From Trichoplax adhaerens (Eukaryota; Animalia; Placozoa), in NCBI RefSeq assembly GCF_000150275.1, contig NW_002060948.1:1449983-1513982 (forward strand): DNA of 64,000 nucleotides, read 5' to 3'. Below, piece after piece: positions 4,084-27,321 of this stretch. A program made the position numbers and the translations under genes. The notes beneath the pieces are model-generated. The model was given only the letters and a program-made list of their open reading frames with translations, did no database searches and was not told the origin of the DNA. Every line of letters begins with the position of its first letter. Position 1 is the first letter of the stretch.

Positions 4084-4270
4084 ATAGTTAAAATTAGCAA
4101 ATTTACTCCATGGTTGATTTAATTTGCATTCATTAGTCTATATCGTGATTAATATTTATTAATTGTATGATAGTAAATTAGCATTGAATTTCTCTATTCG
4201 ATAGTTAACTTTAGCAAATTTTCTCCAAGATTGGTCTTAATTTCATCCGGTAGTCTATACCTTGATTAAT
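4084..4270. repeat. Diverged two-copy direct repeat (~116-bp period), intronic
   Basis: gatagttaaaattagcaaatttactcca...agtctatatcgtgattaat at 4084 versus gatagttaactttagcaaattttctcca...agtctataccttgattaat at 4200. Confidence 0.7.
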
Positions 4271-16500: not shown

Positions 16501-19500
16501 CTTTTGAGATAAGCCGCGTGAACTTTTACCTCCTGAAGTTGCTTGACCCGTAAAGCTCATAACTTTCACGGTCGGTGAATAATGTTTGAGAAGATCAGTT
16601 ATTTCTACTACAGAATCTCGATATTGAGCAAATATCATTATCCGTGTTTTTAACGATGATTGTCCAGACTGTTCATATATATATAAGCATAAAAATTTGA
16701 TTAAAAGAGTTGATAGATATATAAGAAAATGGCAGTACAATATCACTGGTAAGATTACCAATGGCTTTTGTTATCGCATTAACTTTTGATACTTACGTTA
16801 CTGTCTGGAACTATAAAGTTTTCGAAGTGCCCAATGACAATGTCTCTTAATTTACTTAATTTTGGATGACTATTAAGCAAAAACTGGACGTTAGTAGTTT
16901 TTGATTTAGGAGTCAACTGACTATTGTAAGAGCGATTAAATTTAAAGTTTAGTTCGTCCATAATTTCGATAAATATGCGATTCTTAGCCAAGTTTCCTCT
17001 AACTTTAGATGTACTCTTGCTATTGTCAACAATGCCTTTAGCAAATTGATAGAAGGATTTCATTCCTTGCTGTATTAATAATTCATAAGCATGATATAAA
17101 CTGATGGCTAGAGCAAAATCTCCTTCAATGCTTCCACGTTGAGTTGAAAACTATAAGGCGATGGAAGAGTCCACGGAATATCCACGAAGAGAAGGAACAT
17201 AGTTCACGACAAACAAATCATGCACAATCAGCACAATCGATTAGAAGTTGATCAATTTTACAGCTCTTAATCAAGTTGAAAAATTAGTAAATTGAATTAG
17301 TAAACTACTTTATAAAAATCAACGTACTCCGGATGTCCCTTTCCGAAATTGCTCTCGCGCTTTGAGAATTTGATATTTAGATAATCTTTCAACTTGATTA
17401 CTGTATAGTACTTGCTGTCTATGCAAACGTTCAATTACATCACCAAGAATCTAAAAATAAACCAAATCCAATTTATCAAAAAAGCAGTTAGATATCACGA
17501 AGACCATTGTACCTTACTTTACAAGTCCAGTAACTTTGACCTGCTTTTACTCTTTATATAGCAAAATGTTCAAACACATTAGCTTCATAACACTGTACCG
17601 TAAGAAATTTGGCTTTAATCGCTTTTAATTCTTCACTTAATGGAACAACAATTTTCTGAATACTTCTTTTATGTGTGTAAGGTCGAATATCGATTGACTC
17701 TTCCGATCTTATTTCCACATCGGATATCAGCAAGTTTGCAATAACTTTTTGTACATTCTAAATTTCGTAAATAAAAATTAATGTTTTCTGCTAGCTTAGA
17801 CTACCCTTGCGTTGGTTAATACTATATAGTAAATAATGTACGGTTAATTATTTCTTTCTATTTTAGTGAACGAGTGAGTAATGTAGTATACTCATAAGAA
17901 ATGTCGTATCAGGACATATAATGATAAGGGTATATTTGGCTTATAGATGTTTACATCAGGCATTAATTGTTATTTATACAAAAATCTTTTCTCTTACATA
18001 CTTGAATATCATCACCCGGTGTTGCACTTAAGGCTAGAACTCGAAAGTTTCGCGTATAATTGCAAAGGCCTCTAATAACCTGTTATTGTATATTGATAAA
18101 TATATATTCATTCAATCTTTAGTAACATGATTTGTATTGACTGCTTTCCTTAACCAAATAATAATGAAAATATGCTAACAAAAATATATAAAATATGTTC
18201 GCATCTAGTACAAGAACGTTTAAGGTTATCCACTCAACATAATACATTAGTCATTGTCTTAATAACCTGACAATATGCATGATTTCCTAAAGCTCGATGG
18301 GCTTCGTCTACAACCAAGCAAACGATATCATTGGCACAACAGGTCTCTCGATTAAGATCATTTTGTAATACTTGAGGAGTTAGAAAAAACACACGCTTAG
18401 ACTGCCAGACTTGACGTCGTTTATCGGGATTCATAGTTCCTAGATTTATAAACCAAGTATTCTTTAATTAGAGTTAACGACAGTTGCAGCTACCTACAAT
18501 AGTCCGAAAGTTCGGTAGTCCAAATAACAATGGATACTGACGAATCATTTTTATAGAAATTTAAACTGGATTATATTTATAATAATAATCTATTTTCAAG
18601 GGTTTAGCTACTAACAATTCGTATCAACTGTAATTGTTTCTAAAATAGACTGAGCTTACGTTGTATAATAACCTATTTAAACAATAAGGTTTTATTTACT
18701 ATTAATATTAAAATACATACACTAAAAATAATAGAATTGTACGACGCATTTACTAATAGAATAAATTATACACCATTTTATGTTAATGTATGTACTCCAG
18801 TTTCCAAATAATGCAAGGCATGGATTTGTATTTTGAAGTGATTGGTGTTACTAGAAGGAATTGTTACATGAGAACAGAAAGTACTGAATCTATCCTTCGA
18901 TTTCGTTTTAATCTATATTTTTATTGGGAGCTTATAACCAGAAGGTTGTAATTGTTTAAGTAAATTACACCAGGGCTGGTGATGTTCTTGTAATAAGACA
19001 CAATGCTATCCACAATAGGTGTACAATATTGTATATCCAACTGGTGGTGGGTTATCCTTATTGTCGTAAACAAATGTGTAGTTTATAGGTGAAATCAATA
19101 CAGTATATAATATAAAGATGCATCAATGAAAGTGGTGTTAACACTAAATTGATGCTTATGAAGTATTCTACTATAATTTGATAAAATTATCGACACGTAT
19201 ACAGCATTGATCTAAAGTAATTTTTACTATCCTGTACACTGTATTTATACCGTAGCCATGTAATGGATAGAGGTTAGGATTGAGTTTGACGTGTTAAAAA
19301 TAACAGGCAACTATGTGCATATACATTATAGGTTTACGTTCTACTTCGGTAACCTGTCAGCCTAATGGTAGTATCTCGTGGAATTCCCGTCACATTATAG
19401 CATGCTTCTTCTTGTTGAGCAACTAATGGTTTAGTAGGTGCCATAAAAACAACCTTGCCATTGGGATACCAACGAAAAAAGTTGTACATAACAACAGCAG

Positions 19501-19852
19501 CGATAAATGTTTTACCCAGTCCAGTAGGTAATGTCACTAAAGTATTTTTAAATAGAGCTTTTTGTGTAATATTATACTGATAATCACGCAGAGGATAATT
19601 AGTAGGATAAATCCAGTTGTTCCCACTATCCACATCGAAACCAGGTAGGACTTCAATCTTTGGCTTGCTACTATGCATGATCGAATGCGATGAGCTCGTG
19701 GATGGAATATTATCTGGTTTATTTTGATCAACACCAACGGCAAGCAATAAGTCATCGTCATCATCTGGTATTTCTATTACATCTGTTACAGTAGAGTTAC
19801 TTGTGGTCTTGCTCTTACTGTTAGACCAAGAAGTTAGTTTGCTTTGCTTCAT
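10588..19852 (-). CDS. FANCM: Fanconi anemia group M DNA translocase (DEAH helicase + degenerate ERCC4 + HhH), multi-exon
   Basis: [13 protein letters not shown], motif [20 protein letters not shown], motif [51 protein letters not shown], acidic [11 protein letters not shown] motif, and a C-terminal ERCC4-like ILVDTRE...[12 protein letters not shown] segment. HhH end reads [16 protein letters not shown]...TTR* (TAA 10590-10588). Confidence 0.95.
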
Positions 19853-21756
19853 GATGTCTTTTAAATTTTGATATCGCTATGACTGGCGCAAACGGAGAGC
19901 TAACGGAATGGAGAGGCTATACAATAGGTGTAAAGCGTTGTGTCTTCTGCCATGTCACAAAAATCCTAACTTTATAAAATAAAGGAGAATTTAGTTATGC
20001 GTACACACGACGTAAGTTTAGTTATATTTAGTTATACGTAAACGCGACTACTCCGCATACTACTATTATAATAATTTATTATTTACTAACGTGTCGAATG
20101 TAATAAAGTTGGGGCTATTTATCAGTCATTGCCCTACAGAGGTAGGTACTCTTAGGTATGGGCAGTGTTACAGCTAGCCTAAAGTTGCATACTACTGCTA
20201 ATAATATGCTTGAGAAAAATATCGATGCAAAAAGTTGACACCGAACTAATCAAATGTAATTGCTAGTTTGAGGCTATATCCAATTTAATACAGCAAACAT
20301 TTTGAAATGCTACCAAGGTCTATTGACATTAGTTTGATTAAGAATAGGAGAGAGATCCAATGACCTTTCAAATTGTAAGCTCTAAGTACTGCACAATATA
20401 GAAAGCTAAATGCAAGGCAAGGATGATGATCGGTTTACAAATATCCAACTATTGCATTCGAAATTACTGCGTCGCTTAAATATGAGACCCTTTCTTGTTA
20501 TCAGACCATTGCGAGCTAGCAAGTGGTAAAAATTTCTACATCTATTAACCATGTGATTCTGTTTTTAAAACATTAGTTTAATTTTAACAGAGTACATGGT
20601 AGGCTGTTGGTTAATAATAATAATAATTATTATTACTTCCAGCTATTGTATTAGATACAGTACTACTAAGTGCCTTAAATAGGAAAGCCTGATCGCTATC
20701 TTACAAGCAAGCTACCAGCTGTTTTCGTATCTATCATCCATTGATATCAGATTATCTTTTATTAACTGATTCAAAGTTCTTTTCTTAATTCAGCAGGTCT
20801 TGATGAAGACAAACGATCAAAATCTGCCTCTGTCTTAATGGAGCTAAGGGATCCAAGTCGAATGTGGAGGCAATCCACATGCTTTACATGAGCATAAAAC
20901 CGATCATTTCACACACTATCTTGTCTACAGTATTTAATACGATGACATGATAGCTACTTTATCGTTGCTCACCTGTAGATTAGAATAGAAAATTGTATCC
21001 CGATCGGCAAATATCTTGAAGGTTCTTGATAAAGACTGGATATTTGCTAGGCTAGATCGTCAGCATAATCCTCGTACTGTACTGTACAGTAATAGTGTGA
21101 CGTCAGGTCTAGTGTGACATACTGTACGTCTGGTCACTGTAGACAGTATTGTGTCTATTTACAGTACAGTACAGTACATTCCCTTAGCGTCTAAGGTACA
21201 GTATACAGTAGGATTCGATTCAATGAACAGTTTTATGCTCGTCGAATATCAATACACAACATTAGAAATAGCGAGATGGTAATAGTAAGTCCTATATCAC
21301 TCAAGGCTATAACAGCACTAAATCGATGTTGTTGACATCGGCGGCAACACGATCAAACACGATTGTCATTCCTTTCTACAGTCTGCTGTACTGTACACAG
21401 TACAGCATACGGTAGGACTAGGACTAGACCGGACTGGAATGTGCCCAAGTCTAATACAGTGCAGCCAGGGAAACATCTCAACTTTTTTGTCCCTGGTACA
21501 GCAGTGTCCTTTTTTAAGGTCATAGAAGCAGTTTGATATCGAATTCATCGATTTTGAAAGATTTCCAAATGTTGAAGATTTATTCGCCGATAGTTCCATT
21601 CTCCATAGTAGAAGAAAGAAACCACCTTGATCAAATGACACCTTTGTAATAATGTACTTATTGTACTACACTATACCCTACAGTATAATGTCTCTATCAA
21701 TACCAAATTTAACTGCCGTACGCTAAGAGTTATGTTTATCAACCATAATCAATCAA

Positions 21757-22092
21757 GGATTCCATAACTACTACAAGCATGCGTAAACGAATCCTTATCA
21801 AAGCGCCAAGATCAGGATAGACCTCTATCACTACTACAAGCATGCGTAAACGAACCTAATCAAAGAGCCGAGATCAGAATAGATTTCTATAGCTACTATA
21901 AGCATGCGTAAACGAATCCTAATCGAAGCGCCAAGATTAGAAAGGATTTCTATAACTACTACAAGCATGCGTAAACGAATCAAATCTAAGCGCCGAGTTA
22001 ATTTAGAATAGATTTCTATAACTATAACAAGCATGCGTAAACGAACCCTAATCGAAGCAATGGAGCTACAATAGATTTCTATCACTACTACA
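21757..22092. repeat. Tandem array A, ~63-bp unit, ~5.3 copies
   Basis: Invariant AAGCATGCGTAAACGAA at 21775, 21838, 21900, 21963 and 22029 (periods 63/62/63/66). Consensus core is GATTTCTATAACTACTACAAGCATGCGTAAACGAA, followed by a more variable ~27-nt part. Confidence 0.95.
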
Positions 22093-22095
22093 CTG

Positions 22096-22380
22096 TCAAA
22101 CAAGCAAAGGAATACGCAAGATGTCATACGGAGCACAGTAAATGGATACGCATGCGTACAGTACTTTTACGCTTAGGTCCCTATCAAACAAGGAAGGAAA
22201 TACGCAAGATGTCATACGGAGCACAGCAACAAGCTACGCATGCGTATAGAACTTTTACGCTCAGGCCCTTGTCAAACAAGGAAGGGAATACGCAAGATGT
22301 CATACAGAGCACAGCAACAAGGTACGCATGCGTACAGTACTTTTACGCTCAGGTCCCTGGTCAATACTGGTCAAACAAGG
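22096..22380. repeat. Tandem array B, 88-bp unit, 3 copies plus a stub
   Basis: TCAAACAAG...AATACGCAAGATGTCATAC...TACGCATGCGTA...ACTTTTACGCT starts at 22096, 22184 and 22272, with a stub at 22371 abutting the inner inverted arm. Confidence 0.95.
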
Positions 22381-25300
22381 TAGTATATTATTACAAAGGT
22401 GTCATTTGATCAAGGTGATTTAAGAATAAATCCGCAGTATGCTAGTCTAAAGCACTCATCACCAACTATGATTCTGTATGGGAAACTTCAACTATGGAGA
22501 ATGGAACAATCGGCGAATAAATCTTCAACATTTGGAAATCTTTCAAGATCGATAAATTCGATATCAAACTGCTACTAGGACCTTAAACGGAAGCAAAATT
22601 CTCTACGATTGAGATCAACTCTATATATCAATCCAGTGACGACGGATGAGCTACAGACAGACCAGAACAAGCAAGGTAATACAGGACAAAGAATCCGAGG
22701 TGATCTCTTGCAGTATGCTAGTCCAAATCACTACTGCTGTACTATGGTTATGTATGGATTAGCTCACGGGGATTAAGTCACAGCTGGACAACTTCGAGCA
22801 TGTTAAGAATGCACCGCCCTAATTAGTCGAACTACGTCATCGGCAGAAAATTCTACAAGATTGAGCAGACTTTCAAATTGGAACATGGCGGTTTACTGAG
22901 TTTGGTATTGGCATAACGAAGTTATTGGTTCAGTAATAGTAGAGACTAATATTAGAAATTCAATATCGCTGAAGATTCGCTACTTGAAGAGCTCAACGAT
23001 GGCGATCAGCATGCTAGACGGTAAGACAAATCAGCCAAAAAATCAAATGCCAAATAGCAAATTGATTGCCGTATTGTAATATTATAATATATATTGGATC
23101 ATCAACCATCCATTGGGTATCCTTCGTAGCCAAATATCAGGATAATTAAACTATTCTGTACCTTGTAGAAAGATAATGTTGGTAGAAATTATTATTAGCT
23201 GTCAATCTTTTCAATAATCTCTTGATGATAAATCGTTTACGTACGCATATTAGTCGCACAATCTCAAATCCAAAAGATTCTCATCAACATCCCAACATTA
23301 AAATTGCTCATCATCGCATCCGTTGGATGATAAGCTTCTACATCGTTATAGGCTTAGGATAGGAAATACAAACATTCTTAGTAATGAATAAATCGATCGT
23401 AAAGGTACAGTACGAATACCATTTGCTCATCAAGTTCATGATATCGCATTTAGCAGTATATCAACATAATGATCTATGGTAGTAAGATCAAATGGCGTAA
23501 ATGAAGGACGGACACGAATGATAACGTTAACTGTCTTTAATTAAAGGCTACATCGATCAACAATTAACAATCGGACGTAAAAATGGACGAATATTATCTA
23601 CCCAGTTGATAACCTCAAATCCTATATTTCGCTAAACTCGTAAACCTATGCATCCAAGATATTAAAAATCACATCACGTAGATGGATAAAAGCGAGCTAC
23701 TCTACCGTCACTCTACGTATACTGATGTGAACATCCATCACAAGATGTGTGAATCCCATTTGCACTGTTGAGAATATCCCGTCTACTGTAATGATGACAG
23801 GGACTACTCGAAAGAAGATAAGTCTCTGTCAGTAATGAGTAAATGAGCGTGAAAGATCCATGACATGAAATTCATATCTCATATATGGATGATATTGCGG
23901 CTAGAAGTTTGGGATGATGATCGATTCAGGCCTTTTTTAGTAATGTATATCCACAATCAATTTTAAAATGGGCAAATACTACCTGCATACTGTAGTTCAT
24001 AATCTCAAATTTAGTGAATGCCAGTATAAAGATCCTAAGGTTAAAACCTAATCATGTAGATGAATGTAGTTGTTAATGAGTCATTACCCTACTTTTAAGC
24101 GTGATAGATACAAGCCCTTTTAAACATCTGCCAACATCAATCGTAAAATGTTTTACAGAAGATTAACGAATATTTTCTCTACATATATTGAGATTTAAAT
24201 TTTTACAATCAATTTGGTTACCGTCATACTGACTAGATCACGGGAACGGTGCAATCAAATTAGTTTCATCCGGTTCCATAACTTAAATTAAGACTTCCCA
24301 GTGTAGACCTTTAACATGGTGCAGGAGTGCAAACTATGTACTGTACCTTTTCGCATCCTTTTACCTTTTATAACATAGTGTGCATAATGATTTCATTATG
24401 GATCATCATCATGGGCTACTACTGTACAGTATAATTTACCTTAATTAAATATCTAATCCTGATTCTCGTACAATACGTTTATGCCAGGATGCTTGATTAG
24501 GGCCTAAATCGTAACATAATCAATTAATTGGAATTTTCAATTATCATTATATTCCATCGTTATCATTAGTAATCATTATAACTTATATCTTATTAGTGCA
24601 GTACAGACTACTGTACAGTACTGTAGCGTTGTGCATAGCACTTGTAATAAATAATACAATCTGTTAACATCTACTACTTATTACCACCAAGTTAACCACC
24701 ACAGAGTCCTGAATGAAAGAAGTTTAATTTCCTTCAAAAACTGGCTAATGATCTACAGTATTTGATGACGATGATCTCACTATAACTCTGCTGTGCGATC
24801 CCAATCTGTTTAGTATAATTAATCAATACGCCGATAAGCTCAAGAACAATTTTTCGCCATGATCTCCATAATATTAGGCTTAGGTATTTATAGTTAATTC
24901 GTTCTGTCATAATACGGACTAAGTAGAACATGACATTACTGCAATGAAATGGGCAACAGTAATTTTATGAAACTTGTAGTTTGTAATGTGCTTTCGATAT
25001 ATTTTTACAAATCGTTAAAATATCCCATCGCTCGATTATGATCACACTATTGCTTATTGCTCTTGCTTTGTATGATTTATCATTCTACTACTAGTTCATT
25101 TTCTACAAGAAGTGAACTTTGATGTAGTAGTAAACCGGATTAAGTTAGGACCGCAAACTTAGATCAACTCCAATTTACTATAGTTCGGATTAATGCAGCT
25201 TGAACAACTACAGTCACACCTCCAAATGAGATCGATTGTTTTCTAGTGAAATCGTATACTACATCTTTAGCAAATCTGTATGGTCTGTTAGAGCCTGTAA

Positions 25301-25488: not shown

Positions 25489-27321
25489 ACGTTGAACAGC
25501 ACGGTGTTAGTAAAGGATACCAAAAACCGAGTTATTAATACAAAACACACCAAAAGAAGTACTAACTTTCCTTGAAGCTAAATCTGAAATTTGTAATGCT
25601 TTCTTGATTTTTTGTTACCATGGTCAACGCTGTAGCAATTACTTGGAATTCCATCGCCTTGATGATTACTGGCATAACGTTCTTATTAACAGCTGAAATT
25701 TTATGCAAGTAAGAAAACCAACCATCTTCTATCCTAGTAGCATAGCATAACATCCCTTTCTATTCTCTTAACATTTCTAATTAAAACTCGTTTTACTAAG
25801 CAAGTAATACAAATAAACTTATCACTTTATAGGAATCGATTTTTCTATTATTTAATTGGTATATCCTGCGGCATCCTGATTGCTTTACTGATTATTGTTC
25901 ATTATTTAAGTGGATACGTTCCTCAGGTTAGGAAAATCTTGTCAAACTAATGCTGTTTTAACTATCTTGAGGTGATAATTTAGTAACTTGATAAGCTACT
26001 AGTAACGTTTCTTACTCTGTGATCAGAAAAACTTATCGCGGTTAGTACTTGTCAGTGGATTTTTTGGCTTAGCCTATTTTACGGAACAAGTCGTATTAAA
26101 TTTTCCGCTGATAATAAATTATTATTGGCGACCACTGGTGATATACCTTGGAGTCGCTGGAATTATTAGTTTCTTTGTTTGCTACCTATATGAGCCCCCT
26201 AAAGTTGATCGGAAGGTAAGCAAATCTGTTATTGTGATAGCAGAAGCTTGTAAATAGGTATATCTATATAATCGGGATACAAAATGTATACTAAATTAAG
26301 GAAAATGTCGTATTCAGTATAGTTTCAATATTATGTATTAATGCATTTCTAGAAGCAGAATAGATATTGATATCTTCTTATTTACTACTACGCGCAGTAA
26401 GTTTGATCAAATTGACAGTAGATTGTACGCTTTAAATTACCTTAATCAATAGTGATGTTGCTATTACGAATTTGCCACAATAGCCATTTCCTAATGACTT
26501 GTTGAAGATATTTTTTCTAATTGTTAAAATGATTACAGAGAGATATTCTTAAGTGGATCATTCAGTTATTGGGTCTAGTTCTCATCTATAACGCATCTTA
26601 TTCTGAAAGAATGGGCGTGGGTATTGTAGTAGCTTGTTGTGTGATGAAATGGCATCACGATATATATAGTCTCTTCATGAGCGTTTTGAATGGTTTTAGC
26701 ATACTTAGGTCAGCAACAATATAACCTTTTTCATTTGTCATGATTTTTACTAACCCTTTTTGACTTAGTTTAAAGATTAAAATTGCAGATAATGATGGCT
26801 CATTTTAATGCTTTATGGTCTGTTTGCTAGAAAATATTTACCGAGATACACGGTACCTGAGCCACGACGTTTATTAACGGAGGCAGAATATGAAATAGAA
26901 GGTAAAATTGCTACTGATAATGCCCTATTGGATCTTCGTCGATATTGCTTAAGTTCTGAATGTAATTCGTGGGAACTTATTAGCAAGCTCAAAGATCCGA
27001 AGAGGTAGGAACTGGCCGATTAGTATCAGTCTGGCTTAGGTCCTGAATTTATAAAATAATCATTATCCTCCTACTTCCGTAATTTTTTCTTATCTGCATC
27101 TTGTAACAACGTACATTTCGTTAAAAAAGAATGCCCATTAATGATACGTTTTTATTAACTATATTAGCTTTGCAAAGTTTCTATGTGGAGAAAAGGACCT
27201 CAATGATGACACAATGTTCACCTGGATGAATGACAGTATGTTTGAGTTAGAAGAAAACACCACTCGTACTGCTACGCAAGAGCCTGACAGCGAGGTATCC
27301 AACACAGTAGATTCCAATTAG
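25489..27321 (+). CDS. NEMP1: Nuclear envelope integral membrane protein (NEMP/TMEM194 family), multi-exon; 5' end unresolved
   Basis: Exons read NRFFYYLIGISCGILIALLIIVHYLSGYVPQ, YWRPLVIYLGVAGIISFFVCYLYEPP, DILKWIIQLLGLVLIY, RRLLTEAEYEIEGKIATDNALLDLRRYCLSSECNSWELISKLKDPKR, FAKFLCG...DSN* (TAG 27319-27321). These follow the NEMP domain pattern. Confidence 0.85.

Follow-up and report, generated by a model that had tools for sequence, protein, structure and literature searches.

In Trichoplax adhaerens, the intergenic DNA that separates a FANCM-like gene from a NEMP gene contains a cassette (positions 21518-22582 of the window, the 64-kb stretch of DNA analysed here) that has TTAA on each side and inverted arms enclosing two tandem arrays. 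We tentatively favor a reading in which this cassette descends from a non-autonomous DNA transposon of the cut-and-paste type that inserted at TTAA, had very few copies, and has since decayed and lost its mobility. Judged from its terminal bases, it resembles Kolobok-type elements more closely than piggyBac. Mobility is unproven, given the confinement of the arms to one locus, a third arm copy outside the TTAA boundary, the lack of an autonomous partner, and the foreign origin of one array.

Anatomy of the cassette

Repeat searches gave outer arms at 21513-21614 and 22486-22587 (102 nt, 94% identity, six mismatches; self-BLAST E value 1.5e-36) and inner arms at 21619-21658 and 22382-22421 (40 nt, 95% identity; 5.6e-11), with a gap between outer and inner arm of 4 nt on the left versus 64 nt on the right. 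This is the feature described in the initial annotation, with limits slightly different from the 36-nt inner arms and 8- and 68-nt gaps given there. Both pairs are real, but they are not nested: global alignment showed a single arm of about 146 nt at 94% identity, interrupted by a 60-nt indel. The left copy, L (21513-21658, forward strand: outer segment, 4-nt link, and inner segment), and the right copy, R (22382-22587, reverse strand), differ at eight sites plus the indel, with R retaining 60 nt missing from L (the stretch of R lacking a counterpart in L spans the 64 nt at 22422-22485). L scores 140 bits against the arm model R1 and R scores 204 bits against the arm model. The cassette arms are the sole inverted repeat of at least 35 nt within 3 kb across the whole 64-kb window.

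The ends read T-TTAA-GG at 21513-21519 (forward strand; TTAA at 21514-21517, GG at 21518-21519) and CC-TTAA-A at 22581-22587 (CC at 22581-22582, TTAA at 22583-22586), in agreement with the TTAA|GG..CC|TTAA ends reported initially, and the complementarity of the arms therefore takes in TTAA plus one further base. As TTAA lies within the inverted repeat and is palindromic, a target duplication is indistinguishable from the arm ends. The inverted ends of the cassette start with TTAAGGTCATAG, the end being GGTCA next to TTAA. Within the first 14 bases L and R are mismatched at two, and thus the ends are conserved no better than the remaining arm.

Inward of L is a 101-nt single-copy segment (21659-21759) with ACAGT-type words in its first ~40 nt, followed by a 63-bp minisatellite (21760-22092, forward strand; 5.3 units, 80% matches by TRF) and an 88-bp array (22094-22381, forward strand; three complete units and the first part of another; TRF 22096-22358, 3.0 copies, 88% matches). 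The two arrays abut, as noted before and now confirmed by TRF, and the partial fourth 88-bp unit reaches the right inner arm at 22382. Units differ among themselves by 7-20%. Kinship of the 63-bp with the 88-bp unit was rejected, as they have only a 23-nt inverted motif in common (p about 0.03).

No transposase-size ORF is present in the cassette, where read-throughs of arrays and arms reach at most 100 aa and have no Pfam match, bearing out the earlier statement that it lacks transposase coding capacity. Coding arms or arrays were also rejected because all six outer-arm differences are non-synonymous or stop-creating. A structured RNA was rejected as well, as Rfam (E values up to 1) and tRNA scans were blank and no G-U bias was found among the arm mismatches. 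Taken together, the arm ORF changes, the missing G-U bias, and the blank scans mean that neither coding nor RNA-level constraint is visible, which fits a relic.

The cassette sits at the edge of a cluster of ACAGT/GTACA pentamer tracts (21074-21402, from repeat searches; tracts at 21074-21091, 21160-21178, and 21387-21402), the left arm starting 111 nt after the end of the nearest tract. On one side, the FANCM-like helicase gene (reverse strand; a homologue is named Fanconi anemia group M protein in one source) has its first coding exon at 19334-19852 and its ATG at 19852, 1.66 kb from the cassette. On the other side are the exons of the NEMP-family gene (25822-27014, forward strand), which has an upstream start beyond these exons, probably near an ACAGT tract at 24609-24625. 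The two genes are divergent, with the cassette between them.

The arms are confined to one locus, where a third copy lies outside TTAA

The genome searched was a 105.6-Mb draft assembly of 1414 contigs, in which the cassette locus is C1409:1471200-1473000. In this assembly, BLAST matched the 63-bp array, the unique segment, and the interiors of the arms to this locus only. Three arm probes of 22-24 nt allowing up to three mismatches gave no further copy genome-wide (a terminal 21-mer apart, see below), and an arm profile search of the whole genome gave nothing outside this locus. BLAST of the cassette and its parts, the probes, and the profile search exclude a multi-copy MITE family. The composite is unique in the genome and only its 88-bp part recurs, inside another element. 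Many dispersed copies with identical termini, which the initial annotation had put forward as support for mobility, did not materialize, one extra terminal 21-mer being the only find. Exact-match metagenome scans with an arm 29-mer and with 20 nt of the terminal 21-mer returned zero matches. The relatives from representative and homologue searches, made in collections that omit very near genomes, were all at most 70% identical. In another placozoan lineage, the orthologous sequence upstream of FANCM contains ACAGT tracts, but neither a long inverted repeat nor anything resembling the arms.

The third best match genome-wide in the arm profile search was a degenerate third arm copy, R' (22697-22883, reverse strand, the same orientation as R), located 109 nt beyond the right TTAA and hence outside the cassette. 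R' scores 19.2 bits (E value 5.6e-6; z 7.4 and z 8.4), against at most 9.4 bits for unrelated control loci in 66.6 kb. It spans arm-model positions 36-177, the 60-nt stretch included, and its core (22710-22757) matches 22434-22481 at 77%. Because R' lies outside TTAA and has the 60-nt stretch, that stretch is ancestral and L is a derived, shortened copy. The identity of R with R' is about 67% versus 94% for L with R, which gives a divergence order of R-R' (~33%), 63-bp units (~20%), 88-bp units (~12%), and L-R (5.6%). L, R, and R' are all of the clear arm copies, and they lie within 1.4 kb of one another. The initial annotation would have read single-locus arms, with homology of any other copies not stopping at TTAA, as a local inversion-duplication, and half of that situation is what was found: the arms are single-locus bar the 21-mer, and the third copy is outside TTAA.

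Several further candidates in this region were discarded. A fourth arm copy at 22913-23052 scored 6.1 bits, within background. A degenerate 88-bp unit before R' (z 2.8) was unsupported by a 21-unit profile (E value 7.4). Homology of the left flank with R' (p 0.03) was driven by ACAGT words. The sequences following R and R' showed no homology past the arm ends (z 1.4).

The 88-bp array derives from a TA-flanked MITE family

Nine 88-bp loci were found in the genome by BLAST. Elsewhere, the 88-bp repeat forms the tandem interior of a family of MITEs that are flanked by TA and carry the end TACGGTGGCTCACAAG, and such ends lie beside 88-bp arrays at C545, C1406, C920, C724, and C1410. At least 30 ends of this family can be recognised. 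They are closely restricted to ACAGT clusters, and the family is mostly present as 22-35-nt stubs and solo ends. The cassette 88-bp units are 86-99% identical to its internal repeat, whereas TACGGTGGCTCACAAG and its reverse complement are absent throughout the 64-kb window at up to three mismatches, and the cassette arms are unrelated to the family. The cassette array is a fragment of the internal repeat without the family's ends and, as flanking-TA TACGGTGGCTCACAAG ends are lacking at the cassette, the cassette itself is not a family member. Of the bipartite cargo proposed initially, the 63-bp array is indeed private to this locus, but the 88-bp array is borrowed.

A terminal 21-mer recurs once, and no partner was found

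The terminal 21-mer of the arm has one further exact copy, on another contig (C1410:8456816-8456836); the start of this copy coincides with that of the arm. The chance expectation of this exact copy is estimated at about 1e-4 to 4e-3, and a reversed-pattern control gave just scattered three-mismatch matches. Blank interior probes together with a shared 21-mer are the pattern expected if only the end sequence is common to the two loci. Near-matches to the end on C1404, C1334, C1412, and C1384 were at chance level (44 versus 87 in the control).

An autonomous partner at the C1410 site was rejected, as no partner end was found in the 11.5 kb examined and no ORF of at least 100 aa within 10 kb inward of the 21-mer. 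A repeat ~330 nt from the 21-mer belongs to an unrelated dispersed family without inverted ends, and a second arm-like piece at C1410 (10.6 bits, z 4.0) was only marginally over controls and was not accepted. The autonomous partner with the same termini suggested by the initial annotation was likewise not found anywhere in the assembly.

Frames matching PF13843 (piggyBac-type) gave 15 matches in the genome, several of 448-528 aa without stops. Two of the piggyBac loci are 99.4% duplicates and are interrupted by an assembly gap. A piggyBac partner was rejected, as a 20-nt arm match in a piggyBac locus was weak (E value 0.017); at the one locus checked (L077, C1397:1064265) no inverted ends were found. 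Note that piggyBac-type transposases are expected to use CC..GG ends, whereas the cassette termini are GG..CC, which does not fit a piggyBac-derived MITE.

Origin of the cassette

For the favored relic, we suppose that a TTAA-type element with arms of originally about 206 nt inserted in this intergenic region, at the edge of the ACAGT pile, and that its left arm later lost 60 nt. The 63-bp minisatellite would have grown in place inside the element, the interior then being no designed cargo, and the 88-bp piece of the TA-flanked MITE may have come by nested insertion or repair copying before losing its own ends. That a transposition occurred is suggested by the inverted repeat stopping one base past TTAA, by the TTAA|GG...CC|TTAA ends, and by the exact C1410 copy that begins at the arm's start base. 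A cut-and-paste element need not leave copies behind, and the stubs of the TA-flanked family show that other transposon relics here commonly persist as ends only. Kolobok is defined by TTAA duplications and 5'-RR..YY-3' ends (PMC9587614; PMC6004289), the latter being the termini found at the cassette, and Trichoplax transposons have been described as single or low copy (PMC2871265). Against this reading stand the restriction of the arms to this locus apart from the 21-mer, a C1410 match that has neither a partner end nor an inward ORF, termini conserved no better than the rest of the arms, and a diverged R' beyond the right TTAA that is more simply explained by stepwise local duplication. Moreover, Kolobok is absent from the list in the Trichoplax transposon survey (PMC2871265), and the piggyBac-type genes that are present should act on ends of the opposite kind. 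The initial proposal of a TTAA-type non-autonomous element therefore keeps its formal hallmarks and gains the extra 21-mer, but it loses the family: with no dispersed copies sharing the ends beyond C1410, the cassette cannot be assigned to any MITE or Kolobok family, nor can it be called a Kolobok element. A narrower version, in which a Kolobok-like TTAA-inserting single copy survived in the ACAGT pile and picked up part of another MITE's satellite, we consider doubtful.

It is also quite possible that no transposon was involved and that the arm sequence is native to the locus. An old direct duplication would have given R' and R; after a break in the ACAGT pile, R would have been copied in inverted orientation ~870 nt leftward by template switching, with 60 nt skipped and A/T-rich TTTAA serving as junction microhomology, and the enclosed arrays would be ordinary ACAGT-pile content. 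This accounts for three arm copies within 1.4 kb and no clear copy elsewhere, for an R' that carries the 60-nt stretch outside TTAA and so makes L derived, for ACAGT-type words on both flanks of L, and for a divergence ranking consistent with arrays that were already present when the inverted copy arose as the final step. Transposons account for 0.13% of the Trichoplax genome, and tandem and local duplications for 2.4% (PMC2871265). However, no direct trace of the repair event is demonstrable, and a copy boundary falling exactly on TTAA with GG..CC has an estimated chance of a few per cent, to which is added the small chance given above for a second-locus 21-mer starting at the same base. A selected function, either as a regulatory or insulator cassette with arrays of GCATGCGTA-type sites or as a hairpin-RNA locus, seems very unlikely to us, although the cassette is intergenic and adjoins promoter-associated ACAGT tracts (PMC2871265), eight GCATGCGTA sites are spread over both arrays, and strong pairing of the arms would be expected in single-stranded DNA. 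The motif common to both units is only marginally above chance, all positions of the 88-bp unit are about equally conserved and show no site-specific constraint, and the 12-nt palindrome occurs at 25 sites (control, 5), of which 13 lie in the nine 88-bp loci, leaving hardly any enrichment beyond the 88-bp arrays. The blank Rfam search, the missing G-U bias, and the orthologous FANCM upstream region of the other placozoan also speak against function. A chimeric clone, a fold-back clone, or some other artefact of assembly would have been conceivable in a draft of 1414 contigs, where repeats are hard to assemble, but artefactual fold-backs yield identical arms, and arms at 94% identity with eight differing sites and an indel, together with the diverged array units, make this hardly credible.

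Comparison with known elements and relevance to Trichoplax

The relic reading draws on the fact that inverted-end elements carrying tandem repeats are known. Xmix/T2-MITE with Xstir, a Kolobok-type system of Xenopus (PMC6004289), shares with the cassette TTAA ends, purine-purine termini, an internal tandem repeat, and the lack of a transposase. However, T2-MITE has thousands of copies, an AGGRR end, and Kolobok transposases in the genome, whereas the cassette is one copy with GGTCA, and one of its arrays belongs to another transposon family. Tetris, a foldback element of Drosophila virilis (PMC4079207), is reported to have long inverted arms around tandem repeats that are also arrayed elsewhere, and DTC84, a tandem-repeat-containing MITE of the clam Donax trunculus (PMC3879986), to have inverted ends around tandem repeats with arrays elsewhere. 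Both are reported as multi-copy with their own repeats seeding satellites, in contrast to single-locus arms and an 88-bp repeat from a TA-flanked element. The cassette has the inverted ends round tandem repeats of foldback and tandem-repeat MITEs, but not multiple copies of the composite. Template-switch and fold-back inverted duplications resemble it in their single-locus arms, an older paralogue (here R'), an A/T-rich junction, and a site in a break-prone repeat tract, although nothing in such events would favor ends at TTAA with GG..CC, or 21 terminal nt in common with another chromosome region.

Taken alone, the cassette is a minor curiosity, a non-coding intergenic inverted repeat, and is slightly more relevant to the biology of the Trichoplax genome. 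According to the published description (PMC2871265), this genome has hardly any transposons, only one MITE family (about 20 copies), and a promoter-associated ACAGT microsatellite without an explanation. Membership of the 88-bp repeat in a TA-flanked MITE family confined to ACAGT clusters supports the idea that transposons move and DNA is locally rearranged in these clusters, and the cassette is a further product of such surroundings. An empty TTAA site in another strain, if found, would be the first evidence of a Kolobok-like element in Placozoa. A Kolobok-like single copy would be a case, caught in the act, of a transposon with another family's tandem repeat. It would show how satellite seeds move from one promoter-proximal repeat pile to another in an animal lineage that branched off very early, and such an element would persist in a genome reported to be without active transposons or Kolobok.

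Anatomy and genomic setting of the cassette

The arms, arrays, unique segment and ends of the inverted-repeat cassette (21513-22587) were all found as described in the initial annotation. The inverted outer arm pair (21513-21614 and 22486-22587) spans 102 nt at 94% identity (self-BLAST E 1.5e-36), and the inverted inner pair (21619-21658 and 22382-22421) spans 40 nt at 95% identity (E 5.6e-11). The left arm is followed by a unique segment of 101 nt, then by a 63-bp array of 5.3 copies (21760-22092) and an 88-bp array of 3.0 copies (22096-22358). The ends read T-TTAA-GG on the left and CC-TTAA-A on the right, and the cassette is the sole long inverted repeat within the 64-kb window. Although both arm pairs stand, they are not separately nested: global alignment gives a single 146-nt arm, with 64 nt in the right copy versus 4 nt at the matching place in the left. 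In keeping with the stated lack of coding capacity for a transposase, the read-through ORFs have no Pfam match. Each of the six outer-arm differences is either an amino-acid change or a new stop within the arm ORF, no G-U bias was seen among the arm mismatches, and Rfam and tRNA searches of the cassette found nothing. These data suggest neither coding nor a known RNA in the cassette.

The cassette is flanked by a divergent gene pair, a FANCM-like helicase (first coding exon 19334-19852, minus strand; Pfam ResIII/DEAD; one source calls a homologue FANCM) and a NEMP-family gene (exons 25822-27014, plus strand). The Trichoplax adhaerens genome contains abundant ACAGT/GTACA pentamer tracts (Wang et al. 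2010, PMC2871265), and three ACAGT tracts are found at 21074-21402, the last stopping 111 nt short of the left arm. Two metagenome-derived contigs from another placozoan lineage (L088 and L089) carry the FANCM orthologue, whose exons are 70-90% identical, and have likewise retained ACAGT tracts ~1.0-1.4 kb upstream of FANCM exon 1. Given these retained tracts, tract position appears conserved upstream of FANCM, whereas the adjoining sequence is not. Two exact-match scans of metagenome contigs for arm sequence were blank.

Copy number of the cassette and its parts

The assembly searched comprises 105.6 Mb in 1414 contigs (roughly 32% G+C), and the window occupies C1409:1449983-1513982 within it. 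Dispersed copies had been suggested as a check of mobility, but when the full cassette and its separate parts were run through BLAST, the cassette locus was the only one matched by the arms, the 63-bp array or the unique segment. Genome matches to two 24-nt arm-interior probes (up to 3 mismatches) were confined to both arms, and a two-arm sequence profile returned both arms and then only noise, except for R' (22697-22883), a degenerate third arm copy. As several copies with identical ends are usually required, the cassette is not a MITE family by the usual criterion.

The 88-bp repeat belongs to a separate TA-flanked MITE family

Of the two array units, only the 88-bp unit recurred, at no fewer than eight further loci on contigs C920, C1406, C724, C1410 (two loci), C1414, C545 and C1412. 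Homology between loci ends at the array edges, the start and end phases within the unit vary, and unit similarity is 88% between loci versus 89.5% within loci; the third unit of the cassette is 99% identical to a unit at another locus. Elsewhere the arrays are immediately flanked by TACGGTGGCTCACAAG and its reverse complement, to which we attribute their dispersal. A complete element of ~115 nt with both ends and a single unit is present at C545:682-796, whereas the C1406 locus (C1406:439216-439850) has the left end plus a right stub, the C920 locus (C920:1360-1862) has the right end, and degenerate ends occur on C724 and C1410. The 16-mer TACGGTGGCTCACAAG gave 30 genome matches at up to 1 mismatch versus 0 for the reversed control, and the 20 sites fetched (L056-L075) comprised palindromic stubs, TA-flanked and 22-35 nt long, as well as solo ends with a common interior. 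The end matches together with these stubs and solo ends thus assign the 88-bp repeat to a separate TA-flanked MITE family, of which it is the internal tandem repeat. A search across the window found no copy of the family's ends, and therefore the 88-bp array of the cassette is an internal fragment of this family lacking ends.

The interior of the family is composite (the 88-bp tandem repeat, 22/59-bp repeats and a short unique part), and many copies have been worn down to 22-35-nt palindromic stubs or solo ends. A published survey of Trichoplax reported one MITE family only, of ~20 copies (PMC2871265), which may or may not be this one.

All eight other array loci (L002, L003, L005, L006, L007, L011, L012 and L013) lie inside dense ACAGT/GTACA clusters, with 4-8 ACAGT tracts each, the nearest 0-115 bp away, versus 4 tracts in 68 kb of unrelated control loci. 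In one unit (L005:682-784) its own GTACAGTAC word has grown into an ACAGT tract. Most stubs of the family are also within such clusters.

Origin of the cassette

Two readings of the cassette are nearly even in likelihood. That it is a relic TTAA transposon is a tentative reading, with a probability just short of even. TTAA plus purine-purine ends is the published Kolobok signature (PMC9587614, PMC6004289), and Xmix/Xstir are known Kolobok-type MITEs that likewise have an amplified internal repeat (PMC6004289), although a published Trichoplax transposon survey has no Kolobok among its entries (PMC2871265). A 22-nt left-end probe (up to 3 mismatches) found three sites in the genome, both arms and C1410:8456815-8456836. 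The match between the C1410 site and the left arm is exactly 21 nt long and begins at the T preceding TTAA, the same base at which the inverted repeat starts; 1e-4 to 4e-3 such matches are expected by chance, as estimated from base composition. Both differences between the arms within this terminal stretch belong to the right arm alone. Inward of the C1410 site there was neither a partner end nor a sizeable ORF, and beyond the 21-mer the arm-like signal was marginal (10.6 bits, z 4.0; controls reached 9.4 bits in 66.6 kb). Looser end patterns were not enriched genome-wide (44 matches versus 87 for the control). On the relic reading, the cut-and-paste element would have to have left no family behind, and R' and the C1410 end would be remnants of greater age.

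Formation of the cassette by local inverted duplication is a substantial possibility that we would not, on balance, prefer. Its single-locus status, its pile-like interior and R' argue for such an event, and the ordered divergences (R-R' ~33%, 63-bp units ~20%, 88-bp units ~12%, left-right arms 5.6%) agree with the inverted copy having arisen last, around pre-existing content. R' starts 109 nt beyond the right TTAA in the orientation of the right arm (22382-22587) and ranks third among the genome-wide matches of the arm profile. Its unfiltered score was 19.2 bits (E 5.6e-6 in 7 kb); it is colinear with arm model positions 36-177 at ~67% identity (shuffle test z 8.4). R' also holds a 60-nt stretch missing from the left arm (21513-21658). 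The 48-nt core of this stretch (22710-22757) is 77% identical to 22434-22481 (z 7.4), and this motif is absent elsewhere in the genome. These properties indicate that arm-type sequence was present at the locus well before the arms diverged, and that the long arm form is ancestral and the left arm a shortened copy. Against duplication, the TTAA/GG..CC termini and the further copy of the terminal 21-mer favor a relic TTAA transposon. Selection of the cassette for a function is improbable, because conservation is uniform along the 88-bp unit, the shared GCATGCGTA motif is marginal and scarcely enriched genome-wide, and the DNA upstream of FANCM in L088 and L089 has neither arm-like sequence nor a long inverted repeat. 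That the cassette is an artefact is hardly credible; a small share of the probability is assigned to none of these readings.

Candidate transposases and other repeats

The ends of piggyBac elements are expected to be CC..GG. The genome has 15 matches to piggyBac-type (PF13843) frames, several of 448-528 aa without stops, but none could be tied to the cassette ends as the autonomous partner that had been envisaged. No inverted ends were found at L077, the only piggyBac locus checked. Stop-free frames occur at several loci (L076-L079; C1409:5016939-5018069), and one pair, on either side of an assembly gap, is 99.4% identical. The frames represent either genes that have been domesticated or elements that were active recently.

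The left end of the cassette (21514-21522) reads TTAAGGTCA, which fits TNAAGGTCA, the extended half-site of ERR-type nuclear receptors; in the right arm this match has been lost. Trichoplax possesses an ERR gene, and the match is probably a coincidence. Another repeat, dispersed, ~500 bp long and without inverted ends, lies at C1410:8456058-8456485 (L024:744-1171). It opens with a tRNA B-box-like motif, GGTTCGAA, occurs at five or more loci (L024, L047, L048, L049 and L050) at 65-80% identity, and may be a SINE-like family. Solely through 17 nt in common with the arm end, a local tandem duplication of ~2 kb surfaced at C1404:599632 and 601688 (L042:2032-2048 and 4088-4104), with a third copy on C1334 (L043).
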